Below, piece by piece: positions 12,082 through 64,000 of a stretch of 64,000 nt of DNA. The stretch spans positions 49,552-113,551 of the forward strand of contig MCFE01000254.1 in assembly GCA_002104905.1 (NCBI GenBank). The letters are read 5' to 3'. The translations under genes and the position numbers were made by a program. Each line of letters opens with the position of its first letter. The first letter of the stretch is position 1. This DNA comes from Basidiobolus meristosporus CBS 931.73 (taxonomy: Eukaryota; Fungi; Basidiobolomycota). A model generated the notes under the pieces. It had not been told where the DNA came from. It searched no databases and saw only the letters and a program-made list of their open reading frames with translations.

Positions 12082-12264
12082 ATAAAGCAAGGAAAGCACT
12101 ATTCTGAGCAACATAAGTAAGATTGAGTAAAATTACCAGTAACTGTATCATACCACTGGCATCATGGTAGAAATTATAGTGCCAGATAGTGCTGTAGAGT
12201 GCCAGATCAATCCGGCACCATAAACAGGCTGGCACTATGTGGCACTATCCAACAGAACAAGTCT

Positions 12265-15200
12265 ATTGACTCTGGAGCTTCTCAACACTTTACACACCAA
12301 AAAGAACTTTTTACCCAATATCAAGAAATTCCAATTTATAAGGTTTTCATGGGTGACAATAGAACACTTGATGCAGTGGGAGAAGGAACTATCCAAGTAA
12401 ACCTTAGAAGCAGTGAAGGAAGCCATACACTGACCTTTAAAGAAGTACTCTATGTACCAGAAATAGCCAAGAACCTACTATCTGTAAGCAAGGCCACTGC
12501 AGAAGGACTCAGTTTCAGTTTTGACAATTCTGGATGCAGGATCACTGATCAAAATGGTGCCCATATTGCTTTGGGCATCAGAGATCAGAATCTATACAAG
12601 TTGACCTATATTCCATCATATCTGGAAGCCAATATAAGTAACTTAAATGAAGAAAAACCAATGCTTTGGCATAGGAGATTTGGACACATCAATTTTGATT
12701 ACTTGCGTAAAATGATCAAAGATCAGCTAATTTCTGGAGTGAAAATTGATCCCCCAGCTAATTTGGAGCACTGTGAAGCCTGCATATATGGGAAACAAGC
12801 CAGACAACCGTTCAAGAGCTCTGGGTTAATCAAAACTAAGAAAAAATTAGATCTAATTCACTCAGATCTGTGTGGACCTATGCAAAATTTATCCTTAGGC
12901 AGGATGAAGTATTTAATCACTTTTATTGATGATTATACAAGATACACATGGGTCTACTTCATGGAGAGAAAGGAAGAAGCTCTGTCTAAGTTCAGGGAGT
13001 TTAAAGCCATGGTGAAGAGAGAAACTGGTGAAAAAATCAAGAAAATACCCTCTGACAATGGTGGAGAATATACCTCAAAACTCTTCATCCACTTCTGCAA
13101 AATTCATGGGATAAAGCAAGAGACTACTGTACCATACTTCCCACAACAAAATGGAGTAGCAGAACAGGCTAACAGATCAATAATTGATATGGCAAGATCT
13201 ATGATCCTTGATCAAAAATTATCCTATGATTTTTGGGAGGAATCGGTTGCCACTGCTGTATATCTTAAAAATAGGAGTTATAACAGAATACTTTGTGATT
13301 CTACTCCACTTGAAGCATGGTATGGATACAGACCAAGTGCAGAACATCTAAGAATATTTGGGTGTACAGCATATGCCAAAAAACTGGCCAGAAATCAGTC
13401 AAAATTTGAGCCAAACAGTGTAAAATGCATATTTTTGGGCTACTGCAATGAGATAAGGCATACAGACTCTACAATTCCAAAGCAAAGAAGCTGATCAAGT
13501 CCAGGGATGTGTTGTTTGATGAAAATTCAAAATTTTCACAAAAAATAACATAAGATGATGATGAAAATTTGATCTCAAGTCCACCAATTGTCAGGATTGA
13601 ATCAGAGCAAAACAATGAAGATTTTTTCACTCCAGAGGACTCTACAACTGTGGTTCAGCCAGAATCAGTGCCCAGGAATATCCCAGAAGTGATTGTTCCA
13701 GTATCAAATGCCTGGAGATCCAATCAGACAAGAAATAGCCCAAACTACTAAATCAATGAGGGTACAAACTTAGCCTATGCCTATTCAGTCCATATTGATG
13801 AACTCCAGACTGTAAAAGAGGCCCTAAATAGCCCTCAGACAAAGTTTTGGAGATCTGCAATGACTGAGGAATATCAGGCCCTGATGGAAAATCAAACTTG
13901 GGACTTAGTCAAATTACCAATCAACCAAAAATCAATTGGATGCAGATGGGTCTTCAAGACAAAATACAAGGCTGATGGTACAGTTGAAAGATACAAAGCA
14001 AGACTTGTAGCCAAAGGATACTCTCAAACAAAAGGACTTGACTATACTGAGACCTTTGCACCGGTAGCCAAGTTTAATTCCATCAGATTAATATTGGCTA
14101 TTGCAGCCAAATATAAGTTTTTTATTCATCAAATGGATGTAAAAACTGCATTCTTGAATGGAGAACTTGATGAGGACATGTATATGGACCAGCCTGATGG
14201 GTTTGTTTACCAAGATAAACCCCATTTGGTCTGCAAGCTTAAAAAGTCACTATATGGTCTCAAACAATCACCAAGAGCCTGGAATTGCAAGATAGATTCT
14301 TATTTGGAATCTTTGAGTTTCAAAAGAAGTAATGCTGACTATAGTATATACTATAAGTCAGATAGAGCAAATCCAGTTCTATTAGCTCTATATGTGGATG
14401 ATCTTGTTATAGCTGCCAATAACCTAGAAACATTGGAAGAGGCTAAATCCAGCCTATCTAAGGAGTTCAAGATGTCCAATCTAGGAGAACTTAGTTACTA
14501 CTTAGGGATTAAGTTCTCCATAGACAGAAGTACCCAGACTATCACCCTAAGCCAATCCAAGTATATCCAAGATATGCTAAAGAAGTACCAAATGGAAGAC
14601 TGTAAACCAGCAGCTACCCCAATGGAGACAAACCTTAACTTGGTCAAAGCTCAACCAAATCAAGAGAGCTTGGTGCCATCTGAAAGCCCTGACTTTCCTT
14701 ATCAATCTATGGTTGGCAGTCTGATGTATATCATGCTTGGAACACGTCCAGATATCTCATATTCAGTGGGAGTTGTCAGCCAACATAATCAGAACTATGG
14801 ATCTGATCATATTGCAGCAGTTAAGCAGATTTTTAGATACCTAAAAGGAACTGCTGATATCTGCTTAAGATACACTTATAAGGATTCAGAACAGGATCTT
14901 GTGGGATACTCTGATGCTGATTGGGGATGAAATTTAGAAGACAGAAGATCTACCACAGGATACACCTTTCTTTACTGTAAAGGAGCAATTTCATGGAATT
15001 CAAGAAAGCAACCAACCATAGCACTTTCCACCACAGAGGCAGAGTATATGGCAGCCTGTGAAGCTACAAAAGAAGCAATGTGGTTAAGAAAACTTTTTAC
15101 AGATTTAGGCCTATGTCAAAAAACGCCTATTACTTTATTTCAAGATAATCAAGGATGTATACAATTAGGTAGAAATCCAACTTTTCATGCTAGAACCAAG

Positions 15201-15370
15201 CACATAGATATTAGACATCATTTCATATGTGAAGCTATAGAGAATAACTTAGTTAGCTTAGTTTACTATCCTTACAGATGAAATGATTGCAGACATATTT
15301 ACCAAACCATTAGCTAGAGACAAGTTTGAATATCTTAAGTCAAAATTAGGACTAGTCAGTATGAACATTC
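12265..15370 (+). pseudogene. Copia-2 pol (protease, integrase, RT, RNase H) with a few disabling lesions
   Basis: IDSGAS, HRRFGH...C-x2-C, IHSDLCGP, SDNGGEY, QQNGVAE, MDVKTAFLNG, LYVDD, YSDADW; frameshift near 13460; TGA at 14928-14930. Confidence 0.9.
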
Positions 15371-15383
15371 AGCTGAGTGGGAG

Positions 15384-15717
15384 TGTTGTAAAAGTTTGTA
15401 TTTCCACCTAAATATTCACCTAACTTAGTCACTTAGATCATTACCTTCAAATCCTAGAGAATACTGACCAAATTCCTTGTTGGGATTTACTTAGAATATT
15501 TACCCAGAACATGAAAATTAGATAAGTTGTCCAAACAGCTCCTAAACTTTGCACACATGTTCTTGGGACCTTCCTTAACCTATTCTACAGTGTTTGTAAT
15601 GCCAAGACCAGGTAAAAGTATAAATACTACTTTTACATTCAATAAATCATTAAGTGAAAACCACATAATCTACTTGTCCTCCCAATCACTTCCAATATCT
15701 CCAAGACTCTTACAGCA
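15384..15717 (+). repeat. Copia-2 3' LTR
   Basis: Follows the PPT; TGTTGTAAAAG...CTTACAGCA. Confidence 0.9.
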
Positions 15718-16948
15718 GGTACCTGGTACTTTGTTGAATACATTCTAAGTAAATCCCAACAAGAAATTTGGTCAGTATTCTCTAGGATTTGGAGGTAATG
15801 ATCTAAGTGGCTAAGTTAGGTGAGTATTTAGGAGGAATTACAAATTTTTACAACACTCCCACTCAGCTAAATGTTCATACTGACTAGTCCTAATTTTGAC
15901 CTAAGATATTTAAACTTGTCCCTAGCTAATGGTTTTGAAAAATATGTCTGCAATCATTTCATCTGAAGGACAGTAAGCTAAGCTAACTAAGTTATTCTCT
16001 ATAGCTTCATGTATGAAATGATGTCTAATATCTATGTGCTTGGTTCTAGCATGAAAAGTTGGATTTCTACCTAATTGTATACATCCTTGATTATCTTGAA
16101 ATAAAGTAATAGGCATTTTTGACATAAGCCTAAATTTGTAAAAAGCATTCTTAGCCACATTGCTTCTTTTGTAGCTTCACATGCTGACATATACTCTGCC
16201 TCTGTGATAGAAAGTGCTACGGTTGGCCTTTAACATTACAGCACATGCAGTTAAAGGCACATTGTTCTTTCTTCTGGTACTTTCAAGGCTATGTCTCCCA
16301 CATTTTTAGGAGGGCATTCTTCTTCTATGACAGTATCACAAAGGCCTCTTTCTTGTAGCTGTATCCTCATCTTCACCTTCCACACTTGGTAGTTAGATCC
16401 ATCCACCTTTTCAACAGAGGGAAAATTTGAGTAATAGCAGTAGTAGACATTGCAGAGTATGACAGCTTGTGGCTCATAAGCCTGTTGTAAGAGTCTTGGA
16501 GATATTGGAAGTGATTGGGAGGACAAGTAGATTATGTGGCTTTCACTTAATGATTTATTGGATGTAGATGTAGTATTTATACTTTTACATGGTCTTGGCA
16601 TAACAAACATATAGAATAGGTTTTGGAAGGTCTCAAGTGTTGTAATTATTATGTTGTCATCTAAATATTCATGCTAACTTAGTTACATAGAGCTTATTCT
16701 TTGATTAGCATTCTGTCCTGACAAAACTTCTTGTTGGGATTTACTTATAATATTCTCACCAGATTATCAGGTACTCAGATTATGATCTTTCTCAAAGTTG
16801 GACCACTTTGAGAATTTTCATGTTCTGGGTAAATATTCTAATTAAATCCTGACAAGGAATTTGGTCAGTATTCTCTAGGATTTGAAGGTAATGATCTAAG
16901 TTACTAAGTTAGGTGAATATTTAGGTGGAATTCCAAATTTTTACAACA
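15718..16948 (-). mobile_element. Internally deleted Copia derivative (LTR-PBS-gag 5' end fused to RNase H 3' end-PPT-LTR) with LTR fragments
   Basis: LTR end at 16483, PBS, gag start to about 16230, abrupt switch to RNase H, PPT 15856-15866, LTR start at 15855 continuing to 15718; inverted LTR piece from 16638. Confidence 0.75.
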
Positions 16949-46706: not shown

Positions 46707-46779
46707 GGCCTCGTAGCTCAGTGGATAGAGCGTCCGCCTCCTAAGCGGAAGGTCCCAGGTTCGACCCCTGGCTTGGTTG
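46707..46779 (+). tRNA. tRNA-Arg(CCT) with imperfect acceptor stem
   Basis: D-arm GCTC/GAGC, anticodon arm TCCGC-CTCCTAA-GCGGA, T-arm CCAGG-TTCGACC-CCTGG, downstream TTTT; acceptor stem has two mismatches. Confidence 0.78.
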
Positions 46780-48370: not shown

Positions 48371-48621
48371 GGAGGCTAGGTGTTGGCTCAAACTGCCCTT
48401 GATAGACGAGCTTCATGTATATACTTCAGCATTGTATATATCAGATCATGTGTTCTTCACATTTCGCCATTCCCAGCAGCTTTTTGATCGGTTGAATAAA
48501 TATTTAATTTCACAGCAAAAATACCAAATATACTGGGCTACTATCTTTGTATATGTTTGACCTGGGCTGCTAACAAATCATACTGTAAATATTTCAAATT
48601 CTGAATTTTCTTGGTGCTTTC

Positions 48622-51600
48622 TGTTGTAAAAATTCGTAATTTCCACCTAAATATTCACCTAACTTAGTCACTTAGATCATTACCTTCAAAGCCTAGAGAA
48701 TACTGACCAAATTCCTTGTTGGGATTTACTTAGAATATTTACCCAGAACATGAAAATTAGATAAGTTGTCCAAACAGCTCCAAACTTTGCACACATGTTC
48801 TTGGGATCTTCCTTAACCTATTCTACATGTTTGTAATGCCAAGACCATGTAAAAGTATAAATACTACTTTTACATCCAATAAATCATTAAGTGAAAACCA
48901 CATAATCTACTTGTTCTCCAAATCACTTTCAATATCTCCAAGACTCTTACAACAGATACTGGGTAATAAGTTCTTCTTGGTGTGTAAAGTGTTGAGATGG
49001 CCCAGAGTCAATAAACCATATCTGAGAATCCTTGCTTGTAGTCATATTCAGCACTAATATATTCTGCTATAACTCCTATTTTTAAGGTATACAGCAGTGG
49101 CAACTGATTCCGCCCAAAAATCATAGGATGATTTTTGATCATGGATCATAGATCTTGCCATATCAATTATTGATCTGTTAGCTTGTTCTGCTACTCCATT
49201 TTGCTGTGGGGAGTATGCTACAGTAGTCTCTTGCTTTATCCCATGAATTTTGCAGAAGTGGATGAAGAGTTTTGAGGTATATTCTCCACCATTGTCAGAG
49301 TGTATTTTCTTGATTTTTTCACCAGTTTCTCTCTCCACCATGGCTTTGAACTGCCTGAACTTAGACAGAGCTTCTTCCTTTCTCTCCATGAAGTAGACCC
49401 ATGTGTATCTTGTATAATCATCAATGAAAGTGATCAAGTACTCATCCTGCCTAAGGATAAATTTTGCATAGGTCCACACAGATCTGAGTGAATTAGATCT
49501 AATTTTATCTTAGTTTTGACTAACCCAGAGCTCTTGAACAGTTGTCTGGCTTGTTTCCCATATATGCAGGCTTCACAGTGCTCCAAATTAGCTGAGGGAT
49601 CAACTTTCACTCCAGAAATTAGCTGATCTCTGATCATTTTACACAAATAATCAAAATTGATGTGTCCAAATCTCCTGTGCCAAAGCATTGGTGTTTCTTC
49701 ATTTAAGTTACTTATATTGGTTTCCAAATATGATGGAATATAAGTCAACCTGTATAGATTCTGATCTCTGATGCCCAAAGCAATATGGGCACCATTTTGA
49801 TCAGTGATCCTGCATCCAGAATTGTCAAAACTGAAACTGAGTCCTTCTGCTGTGGCCTTGCTTACAGAGAGTAGATTGTTGGCTATTTCTGGTACATAAA
49901 GTACTTCTTCAAAGGTCAGTGTATGGCTTCCTTCACTGATTCTAAGGTTTACTTGGAGAGTTCCTTCTCCCACTGCATCAAGTGTTCTATTGTCACCCAT
50001 GAAAACCTTCTTAATTGGAATTTCTTGATAGTGGGTAAAAAGTTCTTTTTGGTGTGTAAAGTGTTGAGATGCTCCAGAGTCAATGTACCACGTCTGAGAA
50101 TCCTTGTTTGTGGTTGTATTTAGTGCAGATATGAATAGTCTATCTTCAGTTGTTGCAGCATTTCCATATTCAGGCTTCTTTTGCTGATTATCTTTCTTTT
50201 TAACACACCGGTCTGATGTGTGTCCTTTCCTTTTGCAGTAGTTGCAAAATAGGTTGCTGTTGCCTTTGTAGGGTCTTAGGTACCTCCTTTGTTGGTTATG
50301 ATTGCTTATTAGAGCATTTTCTTCTTCCTTCTTATTGGCGCTTGATTTTCTTAATTCTTCACTCAGGAGCCTTCCATACACGTAATTTAAGGTCAAATCT
50401 TCAGTTCTGGACTCTAGGGCTGATACAAGGCCCTGAAACTTGTCTGTCAGGCCATTCAGGATGGTGACTATCACATCCTCATCAGTAGTTGGTACACCCA
50501 CAGATTCCATCTCATCTACCAGCAGGGTAATTCTGTTAATTAGATTTTTCATTTCTTCTCCTGGTAGCATCTTTGTAGTAAGGAATTTTTGTCTCAGATA
50601 CATCTTCTTGGCAGCTGAACATGGCTGGTAGGTGTCTTCTAATGCTTTCCAGGCATTCTTTGCAGTTTTTGCTCTTGAGCATTGAATTAACAATTTGTCC
50701 TTGACATTAAGGCAAATGCAGTTAAAGGCACTTTGTTCTTTCTTCTGGTACTTTAAGGCTTCCTCTCCCACGTTTTTAGTAGGGCATTCTTCTCCCGTGA
50801 CAATATCCCAAAGGCCTCTTTCTTGTAGCAGCATCTTCATCTTCACCTTCCACACTTGGTAGTTAGATCCATCCAACTTTTCAGCAGAGGGAAAAATTCC
50901 AGTAATAGCAGTAGTAGACATTGCAGAGAGTGACAGCTTGGGGCTCATAACCTGTTGTAAGAGTCTTGGAGATATTGAAGATCCACCACAGGATACACCT
51001 TTCTTTACTGTAAAGGAGCAATATCATGGAATTCAAGAAAGCAACCAACCATAGCACTTTCTACTACAGAGGCAGAGTATATGACAGCCTGTGAAGCTAC
51101 AAAAGAAGCAATATGGTTAAGAAAACTCTTTACAGACTTAGGCCTATGTCAAAAAATGCCTATTACTTTATTTCAAGATAATCAAGGATGTATACAATCA
51201 GGTGGAAATTTAACTTTTCACACCAGAACTAAGCATATAGGTATTAGATATCATTTCATACATGAAGCTATAGAGAATAGCTTAGCTGACTTAGTTAACA
51301 GTCCTACAGATGAAATGATTGCAGACATATTTACTAAACCAATAGCCGGAGACAAAATTAAATATCACAGGTCACAATTAGGACTAGTCAGTATGAACAT
51401 TTAGATGAGTGGAAGTGTTGTAGAAGTTTGTAATTCCACCTAAACATTCATCTAACTTAGTCACTTGGATCATTCCTACAAATCTTGGATAACATTGACC
51501 AAATTCCTTGTTGGGATTTACTTAGAATATTTTCATCAAAATATCAGCTACCCAGAACATGAAAATTCAATAAAGTGCTCAAACAGCCCCAAACTATGCA

Positions 51601-51762
51601 CACATGTTCTTGGGACCTTTTTATACCTATTCTACATGTTTTTTATGCCAAGACCTTGCAAAAGTATAAATACTACTTTTACTTTCAATCAATCATTAAG
51701 TGAAACCACATAATCTGCTTGTTCTCCCAATCACTTCCAATATCTCCAGGACTCTTAGAGCA
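48622..51762. mobile_element. Rearranged Copia composite: + LTR (48622-48954), inverted gag-PR-IN (48955-50975), + RNase H-PPT-LTR (about 50978-51762)
   Basis: Homology to Copia-2 parts in mixed orientation; flanks CTTTC and GAGAG do not form a TSD. Confidence 0.85.
49434..50948 (-). CDS. Copia gag-protease-integrase N-part (504 aa; 1-bp frameshift near 49445, integrase core continues to about 49057)
   Basis: UBN2-like gag, CNYCKRKGHTSDRC knuckle, WYIDSGASQH, LWHRRFGH, IHSDLCGP. Confidence 0.88.
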   Translation of the reverse strand: MSPKLSLSAMSTTAITGIFPSAEKLDGSNYQVWKVKMKMLLQERGLWDIVTGEECPTKNVGEEALKYQKKEQSAFNCICLNVKDKLLIQCSRAKTAKNAWKALEDTYQPCSAAKKMYLRQKFLTTKMLPGEEMKNLINRITLLVDEMESVGVPTTDEDVIVTILNGLTDKFQGLVSALESRTEDLTLNYVYGRLLSEELRKSSANKKEEENALISNHNQQRRYLRPYKGNSNLFCNYCKRKGHTSDRCVKKKDNQQKKPEYGNAATTEDRLFISALNTTTNKDSQTWYIDSGASQHFTHQKELFTHYQEIPIKKVFMGDNRTLDAVGEGTLQVNLRISEGSHTLTFEEVLYVPEIANNLLSVSKATAEGLSFSFDNSGCRITDQNGAHIALGIRDQNLYRLTYIPSYLETNISNLNEETPMLWHRRFGHINFDYLCKMIRDQLISGVKVDPSANLEHCEACIYGKQARQLFKSSGLVKTKIKLDLIHSDLCGPMQNLSLGRMST

Positions 51763-53216
51763 GAGAGGTGGAATGGCAGCTAGGGATGAGAATCAGTGGA
51801 CTGTCAGAGCACCATATAAGAAAAGTCATGTATGCATCTGACAAGCATTAGACAACCATTGAGCTATTGTCAGAAGGCTGTTGAGTTTTATAGCATATAT
51901 GGAAAGAGCCTGTATGCACTAAGAGCTTATGATACCACTATAGTGCTGTTGAACAAACAGCATTGCAGCATTTGAGTACTATATGAATGCAATATAACAT
52001 AGTATCAAAGGCATATCATAGATTAAAAGCAGAGTAAGTGTCAAATTTTCATCTGACAATTGTTGCAGCACTGTCAAATGACTGTTGGATTATCCATCAT
52101 GTATTGAGATAGATGCAGCAGCATTAAAGATACAAAATACTGTCAGAATTCCATTGTAATTTTGGCAGGGTAGAGTTGAAATAAAGGTTTATTATCTGAT
52201 ATCAATGTCCACCAAATTGCAAAATGTAGGCTGTTGAAATTGTGGTGGAGTACTGTAGGGAATCCAAAATGCAGTTTCTCTGACAGGATTTTGGCAGGAA
52301 TTAGCCATGTTAATCCAGATCTAAGCTAACTTTGTCCCAGTAATTTTTGCTAGGGTATTGTGCTACAACATGCAATAATATATCGAATTTAGCCTAAATT
52401 TTATTCTCATAAATATGAGTTCTTGGGAATTTTTAAGTAATCCTGGTGCCACTACTGCTTTCCTAATACAACACTGGAGCAAATATCTGCAAAAACTGTG
52501 GAGTGGGTACACCTATTGCCATTAGGGAGTGTCTAGTAGGACTGCCTGCTACCACAAGTCTTCTACAGCTTTTAGATTACACCCAGTCATTTATGATACT
52601 ACCAGCATTAGAAGTGTCTGTTGCAATGTTAAGTATTTTACCCAATAACTCCTATATTATGAATTGGTACTTTGTTATTTATCATAGTAGTAATTATTAG
52701 CTTGGAAATTAGTTTTCAAGATACTTGCTAATTCTCAGAAATGGTTAAAGTCCTGATTTATATCAGAATTTTCAGATTTGCACACAAAGTCCTGGGACCT
52801 TTCTCCAAACAATCTTATTATTACTTTTACCAACTTCTGCAATAGGTATAAATACTCTGTTGCTACTCAATAAAATAACAAGTGAATGTGACAAAAAGCA
52901 TATATTTCTCCAAATTACTTCAATACTCCCCAAGTCAACTTGTAACAGTGTCTTCACTCAGATTCAGGTTAGTGAGGATCATTTATAATTTATAGTTTAG
53001 ATTTTTGAAGAGATACAGTACTCTCTAAGAGATATAGAGGCAGGTCATACATTGAAAAAGGCTGCAGTTGCAAAAGGTGGTGAGAATATTGTCCAGTATG
53101 AGGTATATGGACATCCAGACACCACCAAAGTGAGAGCTTGATGTCATTGTATGAAGAATGATGGATTTGAAGAAATAAGTAGGGTATCAGTGTTACAGTA
53201 TGCAACAGGGTTAAAT

Positions 53217-53569
53217 TGCTGTTAGAGTCTTGGAGATATTGGAGGTGATTTGGAGAACAAGTAAAATGTGTGATTTTCACTTGGTGATCTATTGAATGTA
53301 AAAGCAGTATTTATACTTTTACATGGTCTTGGAATAACAAGCATGTAGAATACGTTTAGGAAGGTCCCAAGAATATGTGTGCAAGGTTTGTGGCTGTTTG
53401 GACACCTTATCAGATTTTCATGTATGGTTATGGGTAGCTGATATTTTGATGAAAATATTCCAAGTAAAACCCAACAATGAATATGGTCAGTATTCTCCAA
53501 GATTTGTAGACAATGATCTAAGTGACTAAGTTAGGTGAATATTTAAGTGGAATTACGAATCTTACAACA
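53217..53569 (-). repeat. Solo Copia LTR with perfect 5-bp TSD TAAAT
   Basis: TG...CA ends; TAAAT at 53212-53216 and 53570-53574. Confidence 0.88.
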
Positions 53570-54591
53570 TAAATACCCTGAAGGGCAAACAGCCAAACAT
53601 GTCAGCATGTACCTTAATGCAATTAAACGTTCCAGAACACAGTACAATTGGCATGATTCAACAGAACAAGTCGTTGACAACGATTAATACTTGTACAGAT
53701 TCTTGGCAAGTAAACTCATAGAATATGTTTAGAAGGGTACTAATAGCATTTATCCAAAGTGTGGTTCTTTTAAACAGCTTTGAGAAATTTCATATTCTGG
53801 GTACCTGCCATCTTGGTGAAAATATTGCAAGTAAATCCTGACAGTAAAATTTGGTCAGGAGGTGGTAAGTTCATAGACTACTGTTTGAGTAGCGAAGTTA
53901 GTAGGATAACTAGGTGTAGTTTGATTATTATATCAGATCGATGTAGTGGCAACAAACGGGCCAGCATATTATCAGATATTTCAACGCATGATGAAAAACT
54001 TGCCAATGCCTCATTCGAGTCGTTTGTCCTATCATCATCGAAAGCCATGGTCCAATCAAAACGTCTAAACCGTGGTCCTAGATCAGGGTTTTAAAGAAAC
54101 TTCCAATATGGTTTACAATTGGTAACAGTGGCACAAGCCATCCGAGTGATTGCCCATTTGAGAAGGCATTCGAGCGATTACTCCTTTTTAGCTTACACAG
54201 AAAACCAAGAAAGCATGCAGGAGGCTGGGTCATAGATAAGAACATGCGTTACATAGCAAGTAATGCTGGTAATGACGGGCCCTACTTTAGCAGGTGTCTT
54301 AGGTTCTTTCAGGGCAAGTCACTTCTGAAAGGGCCAATCTGAGCGTATGCACGAACCAAGAAATGCACTCAGATTGGTGTAAATGGAGCCAATAAGACAA
54401 TAATGGAAAGCGGATGATATATGTAGGGCAGGCCAAGGAAACAGCCAATGATGGCTTTCAACGCGACCACTGCTAGGTTTGTTGAGGCTCTTCACACCAT
54501 ATAGTGCAAGGCCGTGATGGCAGATAGCAATGTCTGTGGTGCGATCTGATATAAATAACTTGAAACTACCTCGTGCTCAACCGTCGCAAGC

Positions 54592-55833
54592 ATGTATTTT
54601 CCCCTACTATTTCTGTTATACCTTTACTTGGCGCAAGCGGTCGATATAGAATTGACCTTTCATAACTATAATTGGCCCTACCTCGATGCCAAGTCCCTCT
54701 ATAGCAGCGTGATAGTTCCAGAAGGATATGCGCCTGAAACATCTTATTGGGGTGTTTATATGTGGTCATTTGGCTACTTCGGCATTCAGAATATGAATGG
54801 GTCTGTCAACTACATTATGTCAATTTGGAACGACGGTAACAAAACGGCCCGAGTAGATCTTGGGCTTCTCAGAGGTGAGCCTTCTGATTGCGAGAATGCA
54901 ACCGGTTGCATTGAAGGAGCAGTTGCCCATGATCTCGTCTACTCAGAGCCCTGGAAACCGGGTGTACCGTATAACTTCATGCTTGATTGCGAAGGCGACG
55001 GGAAAACTAGGAAATTGTCAAGCTACATTTTTAAGAATGACCATTGGATATTGATTACTCAGTTTGTCCTCCCCGGTTACAACGAATGTTACTCCCCTCC
55101 GTTCTTTCAATTTTTGGAGAATCCGGCGTGGAATAGCGGTTCCTGGCCGCTGGAAAAATCTGCATCCCGCCACCAAAGGAGAGGGATTTATTACAACCAA
55201 TACATGAAACAAGTCGGCTCTGACGAGTGGCTTCCGGGCACCCAGGCTACTCCTTCTTTTAACCCGCCGGGCGATAAACCACATGACGAGTTTTACGAAG
55301 TACTTCCATGGCCAGAGCGGAATGGAGTCATGTTGGTTTCGGATGGGGCCAAGCCCGGAACGGAGGTCCCTAATCCGTATTCTGTTGTCAATTTCAACAT
55401 TTCGAAAATGGAGCCGCCAATTCCTTTGGATTATACACCCAAAGGTAAGCACACTGTGACAAGGGCCGAGACTTATATGTCCTACCAAGTGATCACCGAG
55501 TCGCCGGTAACGACCACTATCACGCACCAGAGATGGGCCACCAACTTGCAAACCGCAAAAGAATTCACCTTAACGGAGACTGAACTAACAACTGCAACCA
55601 GTACTGTCAAGACTAGTGCCACTGAAACCCAGACATATACAGTAACTCTTCCTACCTATGTGGTGACTGAGCTGACTGATGAGACCCAAGTGGTGACCGA
55701 GGTGCATACCGCAATTATATCCGTCAAGCCACGCACCTCTACAGATATTAAGGTAGATGAAAGTACAGTTACCATATATGAGACTCAAGAGTCCACCGTA
55801 TATGCTCCCGCAGTTACAGTTTATAGAGAATAG
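54592..55833 (+). CDS. Secreted protein with DUF3472-like domain and Thr-rich tail, intronless
   Basis: Hydrophobic signal peptide (cleavage near AQA/VD); GYFGIQ...IMSIW...PWKPGVPYNF...FLEN...RRGIYYNQ pattern; T/E/V-rich C-terminus; TATA-like motif near 54550. Confidence 0.75.
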   Translation: MYFPLLFLLYLYLAQAVDIELTFHNYNWPYLDAKSLYSSVIVPEGYAPETSYWGVYMWSFGYFGIQNMNGSVNYIMSIWNDGNKTARVDLGLLRGEPSDCENATGCIEGAVAHDLVYSEPWKPGVPYNFMLDCEGDGKTRKLSSYIFKNDHWILITQFVLPGYNECYSPPFFQFLENPAWNSGSWPLEKSASRHQRRGIYYNQYMKQVGSDEWLPGTQATPSFNPPGDKPHDEFYEVLPWPERNGVMLVSDGAKPGTEVPNPYSVVNFNISKMEPPIPLDYTPKGKHTVTRAETYMSYQVITESPVTTTITHQRWATNLQTAKEFTLTETELTTATSTVKTSATETQTYTVTLPTYVVTELTDETQVVTEVHTAIISVKPRTSTDIKVDESTVTIYETQESTVYAPAVTVYRE

Positions 55834-56587: not shown

Positions 56588-56748
56588 GTTCTTTGAGTTA
56601 CCCCAGAAGTGAGCAGTAGTCACAGCCCATGTAGAAAAACCCCAGCTGGCCCAAAAGAAACCAGTTGCTTCTTTTTAGAATATTGATCTCGTTTATATAT
56701 ATATATACAGGTGAAATCTTTATTTCAGTTGAAACAAAGAAGCCAGCA

Positions 56749-59517
56749 CTAGTGTTGTAGCTTTGATACAAGAATGTGTAGCTGAGGGGAATTTGTAGGT
56801 AAGTTAATAAGAAGTGAAGACAGTTCTTCAGTGCTCAAGACACTGTTCAGTGGGATGGGGGGTAGCAAGAGAGGTAAGAATGACTTGTGAACAACATTAA
56901 TGAGGGGAATGTGATAAGGATTGATATTCATCATAAAGGGAGTGTGCTGCTGCAGATATTGCTGCCAAAGGTCTGTCAAGTACTTCAGGTAGGCCAGCTT
57001 GGGTTTTTCTGACTGCAGAATAAATTGAGCAAATATCTTGACTTCAGGATCTCCAAGTATAGTTCTCCAGCAGAAGCCAGGTGTTGTGTGGTGTGTTCTC
57101 TTCCATGCCTTAATAAGTGGGTTATTGCAGTGGTGAAGCCTGATATATAATCTGGTTCTGAGGTAGAGAAGTCTGATCTTATAGGGCATAAACCCAAAAG
57201 CACCAAGAATAGCATGTCTGTAGGGGCATTCAGGCAAATGAGGCACCAAGGAGGTAATGCACCATACTGCAAACTTGTCATGCTTAGTGCAGTCTCTAGA
57301 AGTAAGAGAGAGAAGTGGTAAGCCAAATTCCAGGACAGGGAAGACAAACTGCTTGAGTAGAAGGAGGCAGCTGGGAGCTGAGGTTGTAGGAGGAGTAACA
57401 GCCAGTAGCTTGTGGAGTGCCTGTCTTGCCAGGATGATTCTCTTCTTCAGGTGTGCTCCAGAGTCTAGTCCAGTAGGAAGGAAAGGAAAGCCAAGATATG
57501 TAGCAGAAACCTGAGCTGGTAGAGTGGAGTTCTCCAAGTTGATGGGGCAGCCCAAAGGTACTGTCTTTGCAATGGAAAGCTGGAGATTATTCTTCTGCAG
57601 ATACTGATGGATGGTCTGAGAGTCTTGTTGCACACTGGAGGAGGATATTCTGATGTCATCAGCAAAGAGAGTAACCAGGCAGTCAGCTGAGAGTCTTGGG
57701 AAATCATTCAGGAAGATGGCAAACAGTATAGGACCAAGCACGGAGCCTTGAACCACTCCATTAGGAACTGAGAACACAGCTGATTGCTCACTTGGGTGCA
57801 GAATTCTTGCTTGTGGATCCAGAAACAGAGACCTGACAAGGAGGGTGAGAGAGGTACTGGAGAAGCATTGCAACTTGGACCAAAGCAGATTTCTGTCAAC
57901 TGAATCAAAGGCCTTGGTAATATCAAACAGAACAGAGGGATACTTGCACTGGAGAGAGTGATCTTGGCTAAGTATGACTGCATATTCCAAGGAGAGGCCA
58001 GGAACAAAGCCAAACTGTGCAGGGTGAAACTTGAGGGAGTCAGAGTAGAGCTCCTGAGCAAGCAGAAGCTCAAACACCTTTCTGCAGGTGGGCAGCAGAG
58101 ATATTGGCCTGTAGGAGCTAGGATCCAGGTGCTTTCCTTTACCTTTGTACAGTGGCAGAACATTTGCAAAGGACCATTCCTCAGGAGTAGAAAGCTGGGC
58201 TGAGTATTGCTGAAACAGTGGAAGCAGAAGTGCAGACATGGCCTTGGTACTAATCTTCAGAAGCTCATAAGAGATTGTGTCCACACCTGGAGCAGTAGAG
58301 TTGGGAAGCCTCTTGAGCACATTATGGATTCTCCTTTGATCAAGTGCAAGTGGAATGGGCAGAGTCTTGAAGTCAGGATGAAAGTCAGGAGTTGAGTACT
58401 GCTTTATAGAGAAGAAGATGTTAGCCAGCTGTTCTGTTGAAGGTAACTTCCTGGAAGAGGGCCTCATTGCCCTGTAGAGTCTTGATACTGTTCTTGTTAT
58501 AGAGTTGGAAGATTGCAGAGGCAAAGAACTCATAATATGATCCCAGAGCTGAGTATGCAGAGTGTGGTGAATTGCCTTGGAGTGGTGTATGGCTGTCAGG
58601 AGGAGTTTCTCTCTTTTTGGGTTAGGGAAACTCAGGTAGCTTTGTTGCAGGGCTGAAACAATGGATTCCCATTTTCTTGAGGTAACAGCAGTAGTCTTGC
58701 ATGGCAGTGAGAGGGAGGCAGACACCAGAATCAGATGCTTCACAAAGAGCCAGGCATAGTTGAGATCATCAGGCAGAGAAAGTAGCAAACTGGCAAGCTT
58801 CAAGTAGTTCCCAAAGTCTTTCTTCTGATTCTTGGTAGCTTTGTGGGTGAGCACAGTAAGTTTTGGCAGCTTCTTCTTCACAACTGGTTGCATAGAAAGG
58901 GACCAGTCTGGGTGGTCAGAGGCTCTCAAGGATCCTAGCTCAGCTCCAGAGAATTGCTTAACTTCATTCACAAAGTAGAGGGCAGCAGCAGAAGGGCAGA
59001 TCCAGTCAACACATCTTTTCTCAGATTGAGCACCTAGTGCTAGCAGATGGCTTTCTCTCAGGAAGTTCAGTAGGAATGTAGACCTTGGCTTCATTCTTGC
59101 AGTCAGAGTAGTCTTGTTCTCAGGATGGGGAATGTTGAGATCTCCAAGCAAGATAATAGGTGTTGATATAGATTGCTGGTATTGCTGAACTTTCTGGCAT
59201 ATAACTTGCACTTCCTGAAGGGCAAGACTTGGAGGCGGATAGCAGAGCACCAGACTGATAGTTGGCAACTGGAGAGCAGCACAGTAAGGGGAGTAAAGAG
59301 GAACACAGAGCTGAGGAGTATTGATGGTAGAAGAGATAAAGCAGATAGAGGAGGTATTCTTTGTTCTAGGAGTAGAAAAGCAATATAGATTAGTCAAAAG
59401 TATAGAGGGTAGCTGGACATCAATCAAACACAGGAGGGAAAATCTTGAAAGAAGTCTCTCTAAAGTTGGTCTTGATGGCTGTATGCTGTTGCAGTTAAGC
59501 AACAGAACTTCAGGTAG
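56749..59517 (-). CDS. Family A ORF2: APE-like endonuclease plus reverse transcriptase, no start ATG
   Basis: LLLNCNS, CYPPP, ILLGDLN, CVDW, SDH; RT motifs APGVDTI, YRPISLL, QFGF, DITKAFDSV, GVVQGSVLGP, FADD; uninterrupted for about 920 codons. Confidence 0.93.
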   Translation of the reverse strand, partial: LPEVLLLNCNSIQPSRPTLERLLSRFSLLCLIDVQLPSILLTNLYCFSTPRTKNTSSICFISSTINTPQLCVPLYSPYCAALQLPTISLVLCYPPPSLALQEVQVICQKVQQYQQSISTPIILLGDLNIPHPENKTTLTARMKPRSTFLLNFLRESHLLALGAQSEKRCVDWICPSAAALYFVNEVKQFSGAELGSLRASDHPDWSLSMQPVVKKKLPKLTVLTHKATKNQKKDFGNYLKLASLLLSLPDDLNYAWLFVKHLILVSASLSLPCKTTAVTSRKWESIVSALQQSYLSFPNPKREKLLLTAIHHSKAIHHTLHTQLWDHIMSSLPLQSSNSITRTVSRLYRAMRPSSRKLPSTEQLANIFFSIKQYSTPDFHPDFKTLPIPLALDQRRIHNVLKRLPNSTAPGVDTISYELLKISTKAMSALLLPLFQQYSAQLSTPEEWSFANVLPLYKGKGKHLDPSSYRPISLLPTCRKVFELLLAQELYSDSLKFHPAQFGFVPGLSLEYAVILSQDHSLQCKYPSVLFDITKAFDSVDRNLLWSKLQCFSSTSLTLLVRSLFLDPQARILHPSEQSAVFSVPNGVVQGSVLGPILFAIFLNDFPRLSADCLVTLFADDIRISSSSVQQDSQTIHQYLQKNNLQLSIAKTVPLGCPINLENSTLPAQVSATYLGFPFLPTGLDSGAHLKKRIILARQALHKLLAVTPPTTSAPSCLLLLKQFVFPVLEFGLPLLSLTSRDCTKHDKFAVWCITSLVPHLPECPYRHAILGAFGFMPYKIRLLYLRTRLYIRLHHCNNPLIKAWKRTHHTTPGFCWRTILGDPEVKIFAQFILQSEKPKLAYLKYLTDLWQQYLQQHTPFMMNINPYHIPLINVVHKSFLPLLLPPIPLNSVLSTEELSSLLINLPTNSPQLHILVSKLQH

Positions 59518-60609
59518 TCAGGCAGAGGTTGTAGCTTCTTCAGAGGCAGCATTGACAATGTGACCTGCAGAGTCCCAGAGCTCTTCAAATGGTGCATCAC
59601 TTAAGTCAGCAAGGAGGGAAATGGCATGATTCTTGAGGAAGTATGCCACATCATAGGAGGGGGCTTGTCTCTTGATGGCAGCAAAGAATGACAGAATGGC
59701 AACATGGGCTGGAGGCTTGTTGAACAGTAGAGAGTCAGAGGATTCAGATTCTTCAGGCACTATCTTGAAGTCAGTTTTCAGCCAGTTAAGGTTCTTCTCC
59801 ACAAAGGCAACAAATGAGTCAGCAATGTTTTGGTCTAGGATAAACTCCAGAATCTTCCCTTTTCTCCAGGCCAGGTTGACAATTCTTGAGAGCTGAATAT
59901 TGCATGCCTTGAGTGCTTTCCTGATGTTGGAAATGGGAGTCCAGGGAACTTGCTTCAAGTACACCACAGTCCAGGTAGAAGCTGGTGGTAGGTTTGCTGG
60001 GGGCTTGTAAGTCCTTCTGTGTTGCAATGGAGCTGCAGTAGTCAGATTGGAGTCCACATTCTCAGTAGAGGGTTTTCTTGATGTGTTTTGCTGAATGGTA
60101 CTGGAGCTGGATGTGCTGATAATTCTTGCTAGAACCTTGCCTGCATAAGTCTGAGGAATAGCTGAGGTGACTGTAGAGGTGGTGGCAGCTGGTGGAGGTG
60201 GAGAGGCAGAAACTGAAGCAGGAACTGAGGTCACCTGGGAGAAGGCAGTAGAAGCAGGTTTTCTGGGAGGAACAGAGTTCACTATCCAGTTGTTCTGTAA
60301 AACACTGGAGTAGCTTTTCTGTGGAACAGGATCTTGCTCTTGAACAGGAACAGAAGCAGGAGGCTGGGGCTGAGCAGTAGTGGTAAGGCAGTGGCACTCC
60401 AAGGAAGCTTTTTGCAAGGCATCTCTGGCAGTTTTCAGGGCAGTATTGGCTTCATTCTTGAGCTTCTTGCATTGAGCATCCAGTCTCTTGTTTTCAATAG
60501 CCAGGGCAGTATTGGCAGCCTCTAAATCAGCAATTTTCTTCTCAATTGTAAGGAATCTCTGAAGAAATGCATCAGTAGAAGTGCTGGCATCTGGGAGAGC
60601 AGTTGCAGG
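59518..60609 (-). CDS. Family A ORF1 (coiled coil, S/T/P linker, RRM-like domain), open to the 5' junction, no ATG
   Basis: My translation extends the track ORF to PATALPDASTSTDAFLQRFLTIEKKIADLEAANTALAIENKRLDAQCKKLK; WTVVYLKQVP...IRKAL...IVNLAW domain. Confidence 0.8.
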   Translation of the reverse strand, partial: PATALPDASTSTDAFLQRFLTIEKKIADLEAANTALAIENKRLDAQCKKLKNEANTALKTARDALQKASLECHCLTTTAQPQPPASVPVQEQDPVPQKSYSSVLQNNWIVNSVPPRKPASTAFSQVTSVPASVSASPPPPAATTSTVTSAIPQTYAGKVLARIISTSSSSTIQQNTSRKPSTENVDSNLTTAAPLQHRRTYKPPANLPPASTWTVVYLKQVPWTPISNIRKALKACNIQLSRIVNLAWRKGKILEFILDQNIADSFVAFVEKNLNWLKTDFKIVPEESESSDSLLFNKPPAHVAILSFFAAIKRQAPSYDVAYFLKNHAISLLADLSDAPFEELWDSAGHIVNAASEEATTSA

Positions 60610-60627
60610 AGGGTTAGGGTTAGGGTT

Positions 60628-61568
60628 CTAGTGCTTTATTGGGATAATGAGTATTGTAATGGAACATACACACTAAAGGAGCCAATACTAGCTGATGTGA
60701 AGCCTGTGTAAGCAAGAGGGATAGCTGGGAGTGTTCAGAGTGTGAAAATTATGTCAAAGTGGTTTGAACATGAAAGGGATAAGGTAATCTCATAGTAGCT
60801 GGTAATCATTTGTGTTAGTGGTACAGATATTTCAAGGCAGAAGCTCAGGTCTAATTGCAGCTATTATGCAATTTAATCTTCTGACCAAAGCTCTCTGAGT
60901 ATGAAACTGGAAGAGTGCATCAGTATCCTTGAATTCAAAGCATCTTTCAGCATGAGTATAGTAGAAGGGCTGCTTGCAGATTGGGCACTTGGAGCCCAGA
61001 CATATGGTATTCATCCTCCATCTTATAGCCTGGAGGGAATAGAAGGTGCTCTTCAGGTACAATGACACATCAGCACCACTATGTGTGTGTCTACTGTCTT
61101 TTCTGATAAGCCTAATTCTATCCCTTGATGTAGTAACTTGTGATATATTCTGAAGTCTCCTTTGATGCATTGCAACCCAAAGGGGAATCTGTCCACCAGG
61201 AGGTGCACTGCTGTTGGCTAGTACATATTGTTCGTAGCCAGCTGGGCAATGTACTCCTTTTTTGATTAAAGAGTTTGGAGTAGTGTCTATTCTTCTTCCT
61301 ACAATGGCATCTACCAAAGCCCTCAATGGGTTGTCAGGGCTAGACTTTGCAAAGTGCTGGCCAAACCTGATACTTAAAGTCTCAAATCTCTGGGATACTG
61401 ATTCAATGCCAGTCAAGCTTTGAATCAATCTATGGTACTGTTTAGTATGATACAGAAAAGAACTTACTACCCAGCCTAAGCTTTCCCTTTGTATTAGTTC
61501 AATTCTGTGCAAGATATCAGGACTGAGAGTGAAGTGCATCATTGGGGCAGAGTACTCCCAGCAAGATC
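60628..61568 (-). mobile_element. Telomeric non-LTR family C, 5'-truncated 3' fragment
   Basis: RSCWEYSAP post-RT motif; C-terminal CPICKQPFYYTHAERC zinc knuckle; stop at 60832; about 200-bp 3' UTR ending AATAAAGCACTAG; telomeric repeats on both sides. Confidence 0.8.
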
Positions 61569-61580
61569 TTAGGGTTAGGG

Positions 61581-62077
61581 GGGGGAGACAGTCACCAAGA
61601 GGTGAAATCTTTATTTCAGTTGAAACAAAGAAGCCCGCGCTACTGTTGTAGCTTTGATACAAGAGTGTGTAGCTGAGGGGAATTTGTAGGTAAGTTAATA
61701 AGAAGTGATGATAGTTCTTCAGTGCTCAAGACACTGTTCAGTGGGAAGGGGGGTAGCAAGAGAGGTAAGAATGACTTGTGAACAACATTAATGAGGGGAA
61801 TGTGATAAGGATTGATATTCATCATAAAGGGAGTGTGCTGCAGCAGATATTGCTGCCAAAGGTCTGTCAAGTACTTCAGGTAGGCCAGCTTGGGTTTTTC
61901 TGACTGCAGAATATAGTGAGCAAACTTCTTGACTTCAGGATCTCCAAGTATAGTTCTCCAGCAGAAGTCAGGTGTTGTGTGGTGTGTTCTCTTCCAGGCC
62001 TTAATCAGTGGGTTGTTGCAGTTGTGAAGTCTGAGGTATAATCTGGTTCTAAGGTAGAGAAGTCTGATCTTATAGGG
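61581..62077 (-). mobile_element. Family A 5'-truncated copy (A')
   Basis: Closely matches 56707-57186; begins after TTAGGGTTAGGG (61569-61580) with a G-run. Confidence 0.92.
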
Positions 62078-62695
62078 TGTTGTATCCAAGAGAAAGTGTA
62101 ATAAAACTCTTGAATGGTTTAACTGAACCAAAGGGACAATTAAGTGCAGAATCTTAGAATTGTCAGAGAGTGGCGGAAATATTAGCAGAAAGATTCTGAT
62201 CTAATATTGGTCTTGGAAATAGCTGGGTTGGCTATAAAGGCAATGATATTTGTTTGCTAGGCAGGCTAGGCTTGGTGTTCTTTGGAGTGCTAGATATACT
62301 AGGCTTGGATAGAAACTAGAACGGAATTGTTGGATTCTTATTTTTGCTGAGACAGAATCTTGATTTTGTTGAGACACACACTAAACCAAAAGGTTCAGTA
62401 CACTTTATTTATACTTTTCTGATCAAGTTGAATTAGTAAGTGCCAAGAGACTGGATTGATGGAAATCAATTTGGGTGTTCATAGGTGCATAGGATAAATG
62501 AAAATTACATCATCAATCAACTGATGTCTTGGAAGCTGCACAGTGGTTGGATAGATCTCAGATGACTAATCACCTGGGAAGGCTTGGCAGATAGGTTGAT
62601 AACGTGATGACCATTTGAAAATAGATCAGGTGTGATAGCTAAAAATAGATTCTGAGGTGGGATCAAATAAACTGTAACTGGGATTTGTTATGTTT
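62078..62695. other. LTR-like non-coding segment (D) starting TGTTG, capped distally by telomeric repeats
   Basis: Abrupt loss of A homology at 62077; TGTTG start, TATAAA and AATAAA motifs; no ORF. Confidence 0.35.
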
Positions 62696-62724
62696 GGGTT
62701 AGGGAAAATCAGTTAGGGTTAGGG

Positions 62725-62836
62725 GGGAGACAGTCACCAACAGGTGAAATCTTTATTTCAGTTGAAACAAAGAAGCCAGCGCTACTGTTGTAGCTTTGAT
62801 ACAAGAGTGTGTAGCTGAGGGGAATTTGTAGGTAAG
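62725..62836 (-). mobile_element. Family A 110-bp 3'-terminal copy (A'')
   Basis: Matches the A 3' end; preceded by TTAGGGTTAGGG, followed by GGTTAGGG. Confidence 0.9.
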
Positions 62837-62844
62837 GGTTAGGG

Positions 62845-63286
62845 GGAGGAAAGTCACCAAGTGGTGAAATCTTTATTTACTTATGACAAGTATCTAAAGA
62901 AGCCAAGTTAATCTGAAGTAGTTCCTAGTTAGCTAGGTCTGAGAGAGGTTTCCTGGAAAGCCAGGCCTGAGAAGTGAGAATCTGAATAAATCTGAGCTAA
63001 GTTATACTGGTTTGCGGTAGCTGAATTGTGGCCGGAATGGCCAGTAGACTGGGGGAACTGAGATGAATTTCTGGGCAATCACTGGCCAAATTCACTAGGC
63101 AAATCTGGCCAATTAGCATTTCAAGGATTTCAGCCAATCAGAGCCTTTGCTTTGCCCGATGGTTGATCAAGCCATCTCCCAATGAGCACACATCAATTTA
63201 TTGATCAAATTTTGCTGGATCCTGGATTTGAACCCACAACCATGGGTATGGAAGGGTTAGGGATAACCACAAGGCTAAGTGTTCTT
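62845..63286 (-). mobile_element. Element B: putative full-length tRNA-headed SINE sharing the family A 3' tail
   Basis: Minus-strand head TAGCCTTGTGG (A-box-like, starts 63277) and GGTTCAAATCC (B-box-like, starts 63234), 43 nt apart; no ORF; 3' end AAATAAAGATTTCACC-N4-GGTGACT as in A. Confidence 0.72.
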
Positions 63287-63294
63287 GGTTAGGG

Positions 63295-63432
63295 GAGGAA
63301 AGTCACCAAGTGGTGAAATCTTTATTTACTTATGACAAGTATCTAAAGAAGCCAAGTTAATCTGAAGTTATTTCTAGAAAGCTAGGTCTGAGAGATATCT
63401 TCCTGGTAAGCCAGGTCTAAGAGTTGAGAGGC
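63295..63432 (-). mobile_element. Element B 5'-truncated second copy (B')
   Basis: Identical to B over the 3'-terminal about 75 nt, then diverged; flanked by single TTAGGG units. Confidence 0.88.
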
Positions 63433-63438
63433 TTAGGG

Positions 63439-63762
63439 GGGAGACAGTCACCAACAGGTGAAATCTTTATTTCAGTTGAAACAAAGAAGCCAGCGCTACT
63501 GTTGTAGCTTTGATACAAGAGTGTGTAGCTGAGGGGAATTTGTAGGTAAGTTAATAAGAAGTGATGATAGTTCTTCAGTGCTCAAGACACTGTTCAGTGG
63601 GAAGGGGGGTAGCAAGAGAGGTAAGAATGACTTGTGAACAACATTAATGAGGGGAATGTGATAAGGATTGATATTCATCATAAAGGGAGTGTGCTGCAGC
63701 AGATATTGCTGCCAAAGGTCTGTCAAGTACTTCAGGTAGGCCAGCTTGGGTTTTTCTGACTG
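63439..63762 (-). mobile_element. Family A 5'-truncated copy (A''') directly under the telomere
   Basis: Matches A' sequence; ends at ...CTGACTG then GGTTTAGGG(TTAGGG)n. Confidence 0.93.
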
Positions 63763-64000
63763 GGTTTAGGGTTAGGGTTAGGGTTAGGGTTAGGGTTAGG
63801 GTTAGGGTTAGGGTTAGGGTTAGGGTTAGGGTTAGGGTTAGGGTTAGGGTTAGGGTTAGGGTTAGGGTTAGGGTTAGGGTTAGGGTTAGGGTTAGGGTTA
63901 GGGTTAGGGTTAGGGTTAGGGTTAGGGTTAGGGTTAGGGTTAGGGTTAGGGTTAGGGTTAGGGTTAGGGTTAGGGTTAGGGTTAGGGTTAGGGTTAGGGT
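63763..64000 (+). repeat. Telomere (TTAGGG)n, about 39 repeats, first unit a TTTAGGG variant
   Basis: Perfect repeats to the end of the window, G-rich strand running toward the end. Confidence 0.99.

Follow-up and report, generated by a model that had tools for sequence, protein, structure and literature searches.

The chromosome end contained in the window (the whole stretch of DNA analyzed here, 64,000 nucleotides) carries, between telomeric repeats, a short repeated element, B, which we interpret with a probability of about 0.58 as a non-autonomous, non-coding Basidiobolus retroposon with the three-part build of a SINE: a head of RNA polymerase III (Pol III) type, a unique body, and a tail corresponding to that of LINE A from the same stack of elements. 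B is short (under about 600 nt), non-coding and repeated, as in SINEBase-type definitions of a SINE, and its family combines a defined 5′ end with 5′-truncated copies. The internal Pol III promoter of a SINE is present in B at the level of motifs only, and the 3′ tail shared with a partner LINE at the level of sequence only.

The window ends in an array of 39 perfect repeats, (TTAGGG)39 (63766–64000, plus strand), and the plus strand is therefore the G strand of the chromosome end. All units within 56710–63762 lie on the minus strand with the 3′ end facing the centromere, and the spacing between them consists of one to three telomeric repeats only. From the centromere-proximal side, the stack comprises A1 (56710–60613), a 5′-truncated LINE A and the presumed partner of B, with an ORF1 fragment (59518–60613) and a 917-residue ORF2 (56749–59502) that has a match to RVT_1 (E=2e-25) and weak ones to APE-type endonuclease models; C (60626–61568), a stump from another LINE whose 3′ end differs; A2 (61581 to ~62085), a LINE A stump; D (62086–62712), a non-coding unit; A3 (62728–62835), a 108-nt 3′ stump of LINE A on the centromere-proximal side of B1; B1 (62847–63284), the 438-nt SINE-like non-coding retroposon; B2 (63296–63432), a 137-nt 5′-truncated copy of the long form of B; and A4 (63442–63762), a 3′ stump of LINE A and the outermost unit below the terminal telomere. 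B1 is flanked by the telomeric junctions GGGTTAGGGGG at its 3′ end (62836–62846, plus strand) and TTGGTTAGGGG at its 5′ end (63285–63295, plus strand), and a further telomeric junction, TTAGGGGGG, occupies 63433–63441.

A second Basidiobolus meristosporus contig, MCFE01001036.1 (L022), holds a stack of its own (12465–16509), in which A, B and D are represented by copies 93–98% identical to those of the window. At the start of this stack a lone GGGTTAGGGGG adjoins unique DNA, and the ~1.9 kb of non-telomeric sequence beyond 16509 represents either an internalized former end or an assembly join. Several features of the neighboring units were also recorded. In A1, the innermost LINE, the second half of the tail hairpin is missing, and (TA)n forms the end of the copy where it meets unique DNA (56690–56712); a similar hairpin-less relic of an A tail is found in a B. 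ranarum contig (L023, 4244–4299) near a DUF3472 paralogue. The DUF3472 ORF that adjoins the window stack (54592–55833) has its best named matches in B. meristosporus CBS 931.73 (62%; the match is encoded on L022) and B. ranarum (52%). LINE C encodes the tail of an ORF (276 residues) with a Cys/His motif, ends in ...CCCAATAAAGCACTAGAA followed by CCCTAACCC, and has no similarity to LINE A by blastn or tblastx. Unit D (~630 nt, non-coding) is without the tail hairpin of A and B and has a second copy at L022 15868–16503; its 3′ end (...GGATACAACA) is joined directly, at a CCCTA/TAGGG microhomology, to the truncated A2 end in the window and to a B copy cut at the internal telomere motif in L022. 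The first 24 nt of D (CTGATTTTCCCTAACCCAAACATA) match a coding segment of A ORF2 (58616–58639, SFPNPK) that is conserved in relatives too, and no match was found for D beyond these 24 nt. Elsewhere in the window, ORFs of copia-type LTR retrotransposons (gag-pre-integrase, rve, RVT_2) occupy 12199–14930 (plus strand) and 49434–50948 (minus strand), and repeats of ~350 nt at 48600–53600 are 77–87% identical to several places of L022.

Read along its sense strand, B1 has its 5′ end at the G at 63284 and starts GAACACTTAGCCTTGTGGTTATCCCTAACCC...GGGTTCAAATCC. No reading frame in it stays open for more than 51 codons, and B2 is 95% identical to it over 104 nt in a repeat search; no further B copies were found in the 64-kb window. 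The original prediction, an element of about 440 bp without an ORF that occurs twice between telomeric repeats, holds with coordinates shifted by 1–2 bases, except that the second occurrence is 5′-truncated and the window copy is not a full unit. The family unit is 514 nt long, and B1, full-length at its 5′ end, lacks 77 nt internally with a breakpoint near 62919–62922. In an alignment with the L022 copy, the 77 missing nucleotides fall between two direct repeats, CTAGCTAACTAGGAA and CTAGCTTTCTAGGAA, which accounts for the loose end that the reads show at 62922. The body is unique, and the full unit includes a tandem duplication of ~76 nt. Within the body, a 15-bp imperfect hairpin or palindrome is formed from TTGGCCA(G/A)ATTT (63081–63113, sense index 172–204), in which the family majority letter at 63093 converts a G-U pair into A-U; the whole element folds no better than shuffled sequences. 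Two CCAAT motifs (63109–63113 and 63133–63137, plus strand; GGCCAATTAG and AGCCAATCAG) lie antisense to B and face the chromosome end, and a third is present in one L022 copy of B; these motifs might act as Pol II promoter elements that drive TERRA-like transcription outward.

To characterize the family, contigs from two runs of one DNA sample (X1 and X2) were aligned to 62800–63300. Between ~1,930 and ~1,970 contigs matched the B region per run, and the summed word depth over B was 4–10 × 10^5, compared with about 90–100 for unique-looking contigs. The B family is thus very abundant, probably with thousands of copies, a rough figure from runs whose kind (labeled 'DNA?') is a guess, and some of these copies may have arisen by recombinational array amplification and not by retroposition. 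Pieces 90–97% alike to B are also present in samples X5 and X7. The depth is flat at ~500–560k through the head to 63275 and falls to ~100k right at 63284 (by arithmetic on the 63276–63292 bin), so that about 80% of the depth or more shares a sharp 5′ boundary. The family accordingly has one fixed 5′ end, at 63284–63288, 7–11 nt upstream of the A box described below. Joints lead from 63286, 63290 or 63294 straight to 62839–62843, the tail of the next B, with 1–8 letters between, while joints of 5′-truncated copies leave B at 62878, 62883, 62902, 62945, 62969, 63022 and 63059 and enter new units. Upstream, B tails are preceded by diverse sequences ending in TTAGGGTTAG.

The L022 contig provides an independent view of the same end. 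Its segment 14831–15344 is a full-length B of 514 nt with an identical 5′ end (CCTAACCAA/GAACACTTAGCC) in a different neighborhood. In the B copy at 15375–15867, the sequence breaks off exactly behind the internal GGGTTAGGGAT, where the 3′ end of unit D is attached. The TTGG found at the 5′ junction of B1 recurs at the independent L022 copy, and the RNA may therefore start up to 4 nt earlier (CCAAGAAC). All B copies of the window and of L022 are joined to telomeric repeats and share one orientation. Two expectations raised beforehand are borne out by these data: (i) that other copies with the common 5′ start lie beside TTAGGG, as seen in very many contigs and in the full-length L022 copy, and (ii) that the copies stop there instead of continuing into a coding element, as judged by the drop in depth at 63284 and by the joints into the next unit.

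The tail module common to B and LINE A (62847–62906, minus strand) measures ~60 nt, so that the sharing had been anticipated correctly and its length, put at about 35 nt, had been underestimated. It consists of GGCTTCTTT, a variable spacer, AAATAAAGATTTCACC-NNNN-GGTGACT.TC and a C run, followed by TAACCC. In B1 the hairpin TCACC-ACTT-GGTGA (62854–67) is followed by CTTTCCT and by the C run into CCCTAACCC. Covariation, judged by eye (an invariant 4-bp core, and an outer pair with one compensatory change and two mismatches), was rejected as support for the hairpin because the changes are too few to count.

LINE relatives with 48–79% ORF2 identity, from metagenome and Logan contigs (P0001–P0005, L001–L008, L020 and L021), retain the tail module, which stands at the 3′ end with CCCTAACCC behind it, and other short units in their stacks carry variants of it. 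In some of these contigs the full-length 5′ end of a LINE directly follows the previous tail, which makes head-to-tail telomeric stacking a property of the whole LINE lineage. LINE A ORF2 is only about 28–30% identical to insect jockey/R1-like reverse transcriptases. Since the tail of LINE C differs, the presumed partner of B is LINE A or an A-like LINE. The 5′ UTRs of the related full-length LINEs contain no B box, indirect evidence that the head of B is not simply a LINE 5′ end; an origin of B as an internally deleted LINE A is likewise excluded only indirectly, because the full-length 5′ end of LINE A lies outside the window. No B-like or tRNA-headed unit was found in the stacks of the relatives on the short contigs L001–L008, L020 and L021.

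The head of B (63205–63284, minus strand) follows the layout of a tRNA gene when numbered from G1 at 63284. An A-box-like motif, TAGCCTTGTGG (63277–63267, minus strand), spans +8 to +18 of the element, and the B box, GGTTCAAATCC (63234–63224, minus strand), is a perfect match to GGTTCRANYCC. The distance from A-box start to B-box start is 43 nt and the A box begins at +8, as in a tRNA, which confirms the two motifs and the seven-base interval after the initial G that had been proposed for this element. Counted from G 63284, T8-A9-G10-C11 and the D-loop GG fall at their tRNA positions; GGTTCAAATCC sits one position short of tRNA 52–62, comparable to tRNAs without nucleotide 17, and the A14 of the A box is a T. 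A regular-expression search on both strands of the 64-kb window for A and B boxes at tRNA spacing returned only a tRNA-Arg gene (46714–46768) and the B head, and the same expression had no match in 100 random 64-kb sequences. The B box alone has 4 matches in the window against 0.42 expected. These comparisons with random expectation place the head motifs well beyond chance. Conservation of the box spacing among copies, on which the prediction also depended, is seen in L022 14831–15344, where it is the same as in window B1, and in the reads, which flag no indels in the head and no variant at 63224–63284 across the B family. No site is polymorphic among 61 nt of the head, compared with 6 sites among 282 nt of the body, a difference that is not significant.

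The likeness to a tRNA extends to the T arm and the two promoter boxes and not to the whole molecule, so that the earlier description of the head as tRNA-like stands in part. ARAGORN, with default and relaxed settings, found no tRNA in the head, and the Rfam tRNA model gave no match at E≤10 on head sequences of 901, 93 and 89 nt from the window and L022 copies; the only Rfam match, a weak one to a scaRNA, was dismissed as meaningless. When the family majority sequence (which has A, not T, at 63223) is paired by hand, 2/7 acceptor, 2/4 D, 1/5 anticodon and 4/5 T-arm pairs form, and the head folds no better than shuffled sequences (z = +0.56). In a near-ungapped alignment with the window tRNA-Arg, 37 of ~72 tRNA positions are alike, mostly in the boxes. 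A metagenome scan with the A-box 14-mer TAGCCTTGTGGTTA and the B box as query returned 11 loci, none of which is B; each is a SINE-like head of another kind, located in an unrelated context that is not telomeric. These loci (L009–L019) comprise four repeated types of SINE-like head with identical TAGCCTTGTGGTTA and GGTTCAAATCC at a spacing of 20–45 nt, and ARAGORN calls none of them a tRNA. Two of the heads with the same boxes (L012 and L010) are missed by the Rfam tRNA model too, which makes the negative result with this model on the B head a weak one. On the strength of the promoter layout, we infer that the B head most likely descends from a tRNA gene in which the other stems have decayed or been overwritten.

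Whether B is transcribed by Pol III bears on the most serious of the competing explanations, which we consider possible and clearly less probable than the SINE-type interpretation. It holds that B is a non-autonomous telomeric retroposon that depends on an A-type reverse transcriptase and is copied from a Pol II or read-through transcript, its boxes being an inert relic of a tRNA fragment acquired by template switching. No T-run terminator follows the B tail, and a Pol III transcript would consequently read into the next unit; both this and the lost tRNA fold of the head are in keeping with a Pol II or read-through transcript, as are the CCAAT motifs in the body and the precedents of HeT-A, MoTeR2 and the R2 SIDEs. 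With such a Pol III transcript, the reverse transcriptase would have to start internally, at the tail, which would be plausible for a LINE of the stringent, tail-recognizing type. The B sense strand is without TTTT (p about 0.04–0.08), and depletion of T runs was considered as a Pol III signature. It was dropped because the sense strand of LINE A (56710–60613) is also poor in T runs (of its 61 runs of at least T3, only 5 reach T4 and none T5, compared with 16 runs of at least T4 on the antisense strand), and the depletion is therefore not specific to B. That it is shared with a LINE of Pol II type again suits the competing explanation. Against it, however, (i) the constant 5′ end lies exactly where a tRNA-type promoter places the start, (ii) the B box is a perfect consensus that has stayed free of flagged variants together with the rest of 63224–63284, and (iii) the CCAAT motifs are on the antisense strand.

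A further alternative concerns the internal telomere-complementary motif CCCTAACCC (GGGTTAGGG on the plus strand) at 63254–63262 (minus strand), which occupies the position of the tRNA D/anticodon stem and is also present in the L022 copies of B. The head could in principle be an accidental composite of a precursor ending in ...TTCCATACCC, a telomerase-added GGGTTAGGG and a 22-nt stump, with coincidental box spacing and spread by read-through or recombination. We regard such an origin as improbable, even though the inter-box motif is a perfect 1.5 telomere repeat in G-strand register, one L022 copy of B ends exactly after it, and in unit D, too, CCCTAACCC lies 8 nt from the 5′ end. The depth does not change across 63254–63262, which indicates that the internal GGGTTAGGG is intrinsic to the B family and not a junction. 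Moreover, within the window and the loci searched, the 22-nt segment on its far side is confined to B heads, and an A box at +8 with the exact tRNA distance was absent from all 100 random 64-kb sequences. Finally, the notion that B forms the 3′ untranslated part of a longer element with coding capacity, its copies being 5′ truncations as every LINE copy in the window stack is a 5′-truncated stump, is largely refuted and very unlikely given the sharp boundary common to about 80% or more of the depth, the joints that go directly to the next unit, the independent full-length L022 copy with the same end followed by telomeric repeats, and the lack of any non-telomeric loose end past 63284 among the best-supported ones listed.

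For B as a SINE-type retroposon, we propose the following cycle. Pol III would start at, or a few nucleotides before, G 63284, and the LINE ORF2 protein would bind the tail hairpin of the transcript in trans, as the shared tail suggests. The CCCUAACCC following the tail could then pair with a TTAGGG 3′ end, either a natural overhang or a G strand that the weakly APE-like domain would have nicked. Reverse transcription primed by the paired TTAGGG end would set the 3′ end of B, facing the centromere, directly on telomeric repeats, and an early stop in copying would yield the 5′-truncated units that are observed. Before the next unit lands, telomerase would add the one to three repeats seen between neighbors.

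More tentatively, and with considerable doubt, the B SINE may be a working part of end maintenance and not a mere passenger, its internal motif serving as a seed for telomerase or for the next element. Because the head contains CCCUAACCC, each completed copy would leave GGGTTAGGG 22 nt from the new DNA end; one L022 copy of B is cut exactly at the internal motif and extended by another element. Were this the case, a Pol III transcript and a LINE reverse transcriptase would cooperate with telomerase in building Basidiobolus chromosome ends.

Pairs of LINEs and SINEs that share a 3′ tail and are of the stringent type are known from eel (UnaL2/UnaSINE1) and zebrafish (ZfL2 pairs; PMC4176376), and the general architecture of SINEs has been described (PMC5786205). 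Like the SINEs of UnaL2/UnaSINE1-type pairs, B is short and non-coding, and between a head of Pol III type and a LINE-derived hairpin tail it has an unrelated body; like stringent pairs, its family is high-copy and includes 5′-truncated copies. Unlike them, B targets the telomeric repeat or chromosome end, not dispersed sites, and is without target-site duplications; its 3′ end runs into CCCTAACCC, not into short tandem repeats or poly(A), its head has lost the tRNA fold, and its recognition by the LINE protein is putative.

The nearest fungal parallel is found in Pyricularia (Magnaporthe) oryzae, where MoTeR1 and MoTeR2 insert only in TTAGGG telomeres and are arrayed head to tail, their units separated by short telomere tracts (PMC8381367, PMC7367193) that can drive array amplification (PMC8381367). 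As with the MoTeRs, an autonomous element and a shorter non-autonomous partner share the Basidiobolus stacks, and the telomere-like sequence carried by the MoTeR 5′ end may be compared with CCCTAACCC in the B head; by analogy, the interstitial telomere tracts from B may make chromosome ends recombinogenic. MoTeR1 reportedly encodes a reverse transcriptase with a restriction-enzyme-like endonuclease, of the CRE/SLACS type, in contrast to the APE-type ORF2 of LINE A (a weak match). To our knowledge, MoTeR2 shares both ends of MoTeR1 and has no Pol III-type head.

TRAS1 and SART1 of Bombyx mori are APE-type LINEs specific for the telomeric repeat, inserted in fixed orientation beside telomerase repeats; they end in poly(A), unlike the tails of LINE A and B, and we know of no SINE partner for them. 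In Drosophila, the consortium of HeT-A, TART and TAHRE combines autonomous and non-autonomous elements, arranged head-to-tail with centromere-facing 3′ ends, that build the chromosome end. In contrast to the Basidiobolus stack, telomerase repeats are absent between these units, and HeT-A, the non-autonomous partner, encodes Gag and is a Pol II transcript, whereas B is non-coding. The Athena/Coprina elements are endonuclease-deficient Penelope-like elements. They resemble LINE A and B in a telomere-complementary 3′ end able to pair with the G overhang, in sharing one orientation and in the short repeats between units, and differ in the class of reverse transcriptase and in having no known Pol III-headed partner.

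Full-text literature searches found neither a telomeric SINE nor anything on Basidiobolus telomeric retroelements. Partnerships of LINEs and SINEs and telomere-specific LINEs are already known; a Pol III-headed SINE confined to telomeres would apparently be new. If B is what it appears to be, a parasite of a parasite can inherit the very narrow chromosome-end target simply by copying a tail of ~60 nt, and its small size and high copy number would suit it to work on the recognition of an RNA and a telomeric primer by a LINE protein. The ends of an early-diverging fungus would then be mosaics of telomerase repeats with LINE and SINE copies, and those of Basidiobolus would take a place between the situation in Drosophila and that in Bombyx and Magnaporthe.
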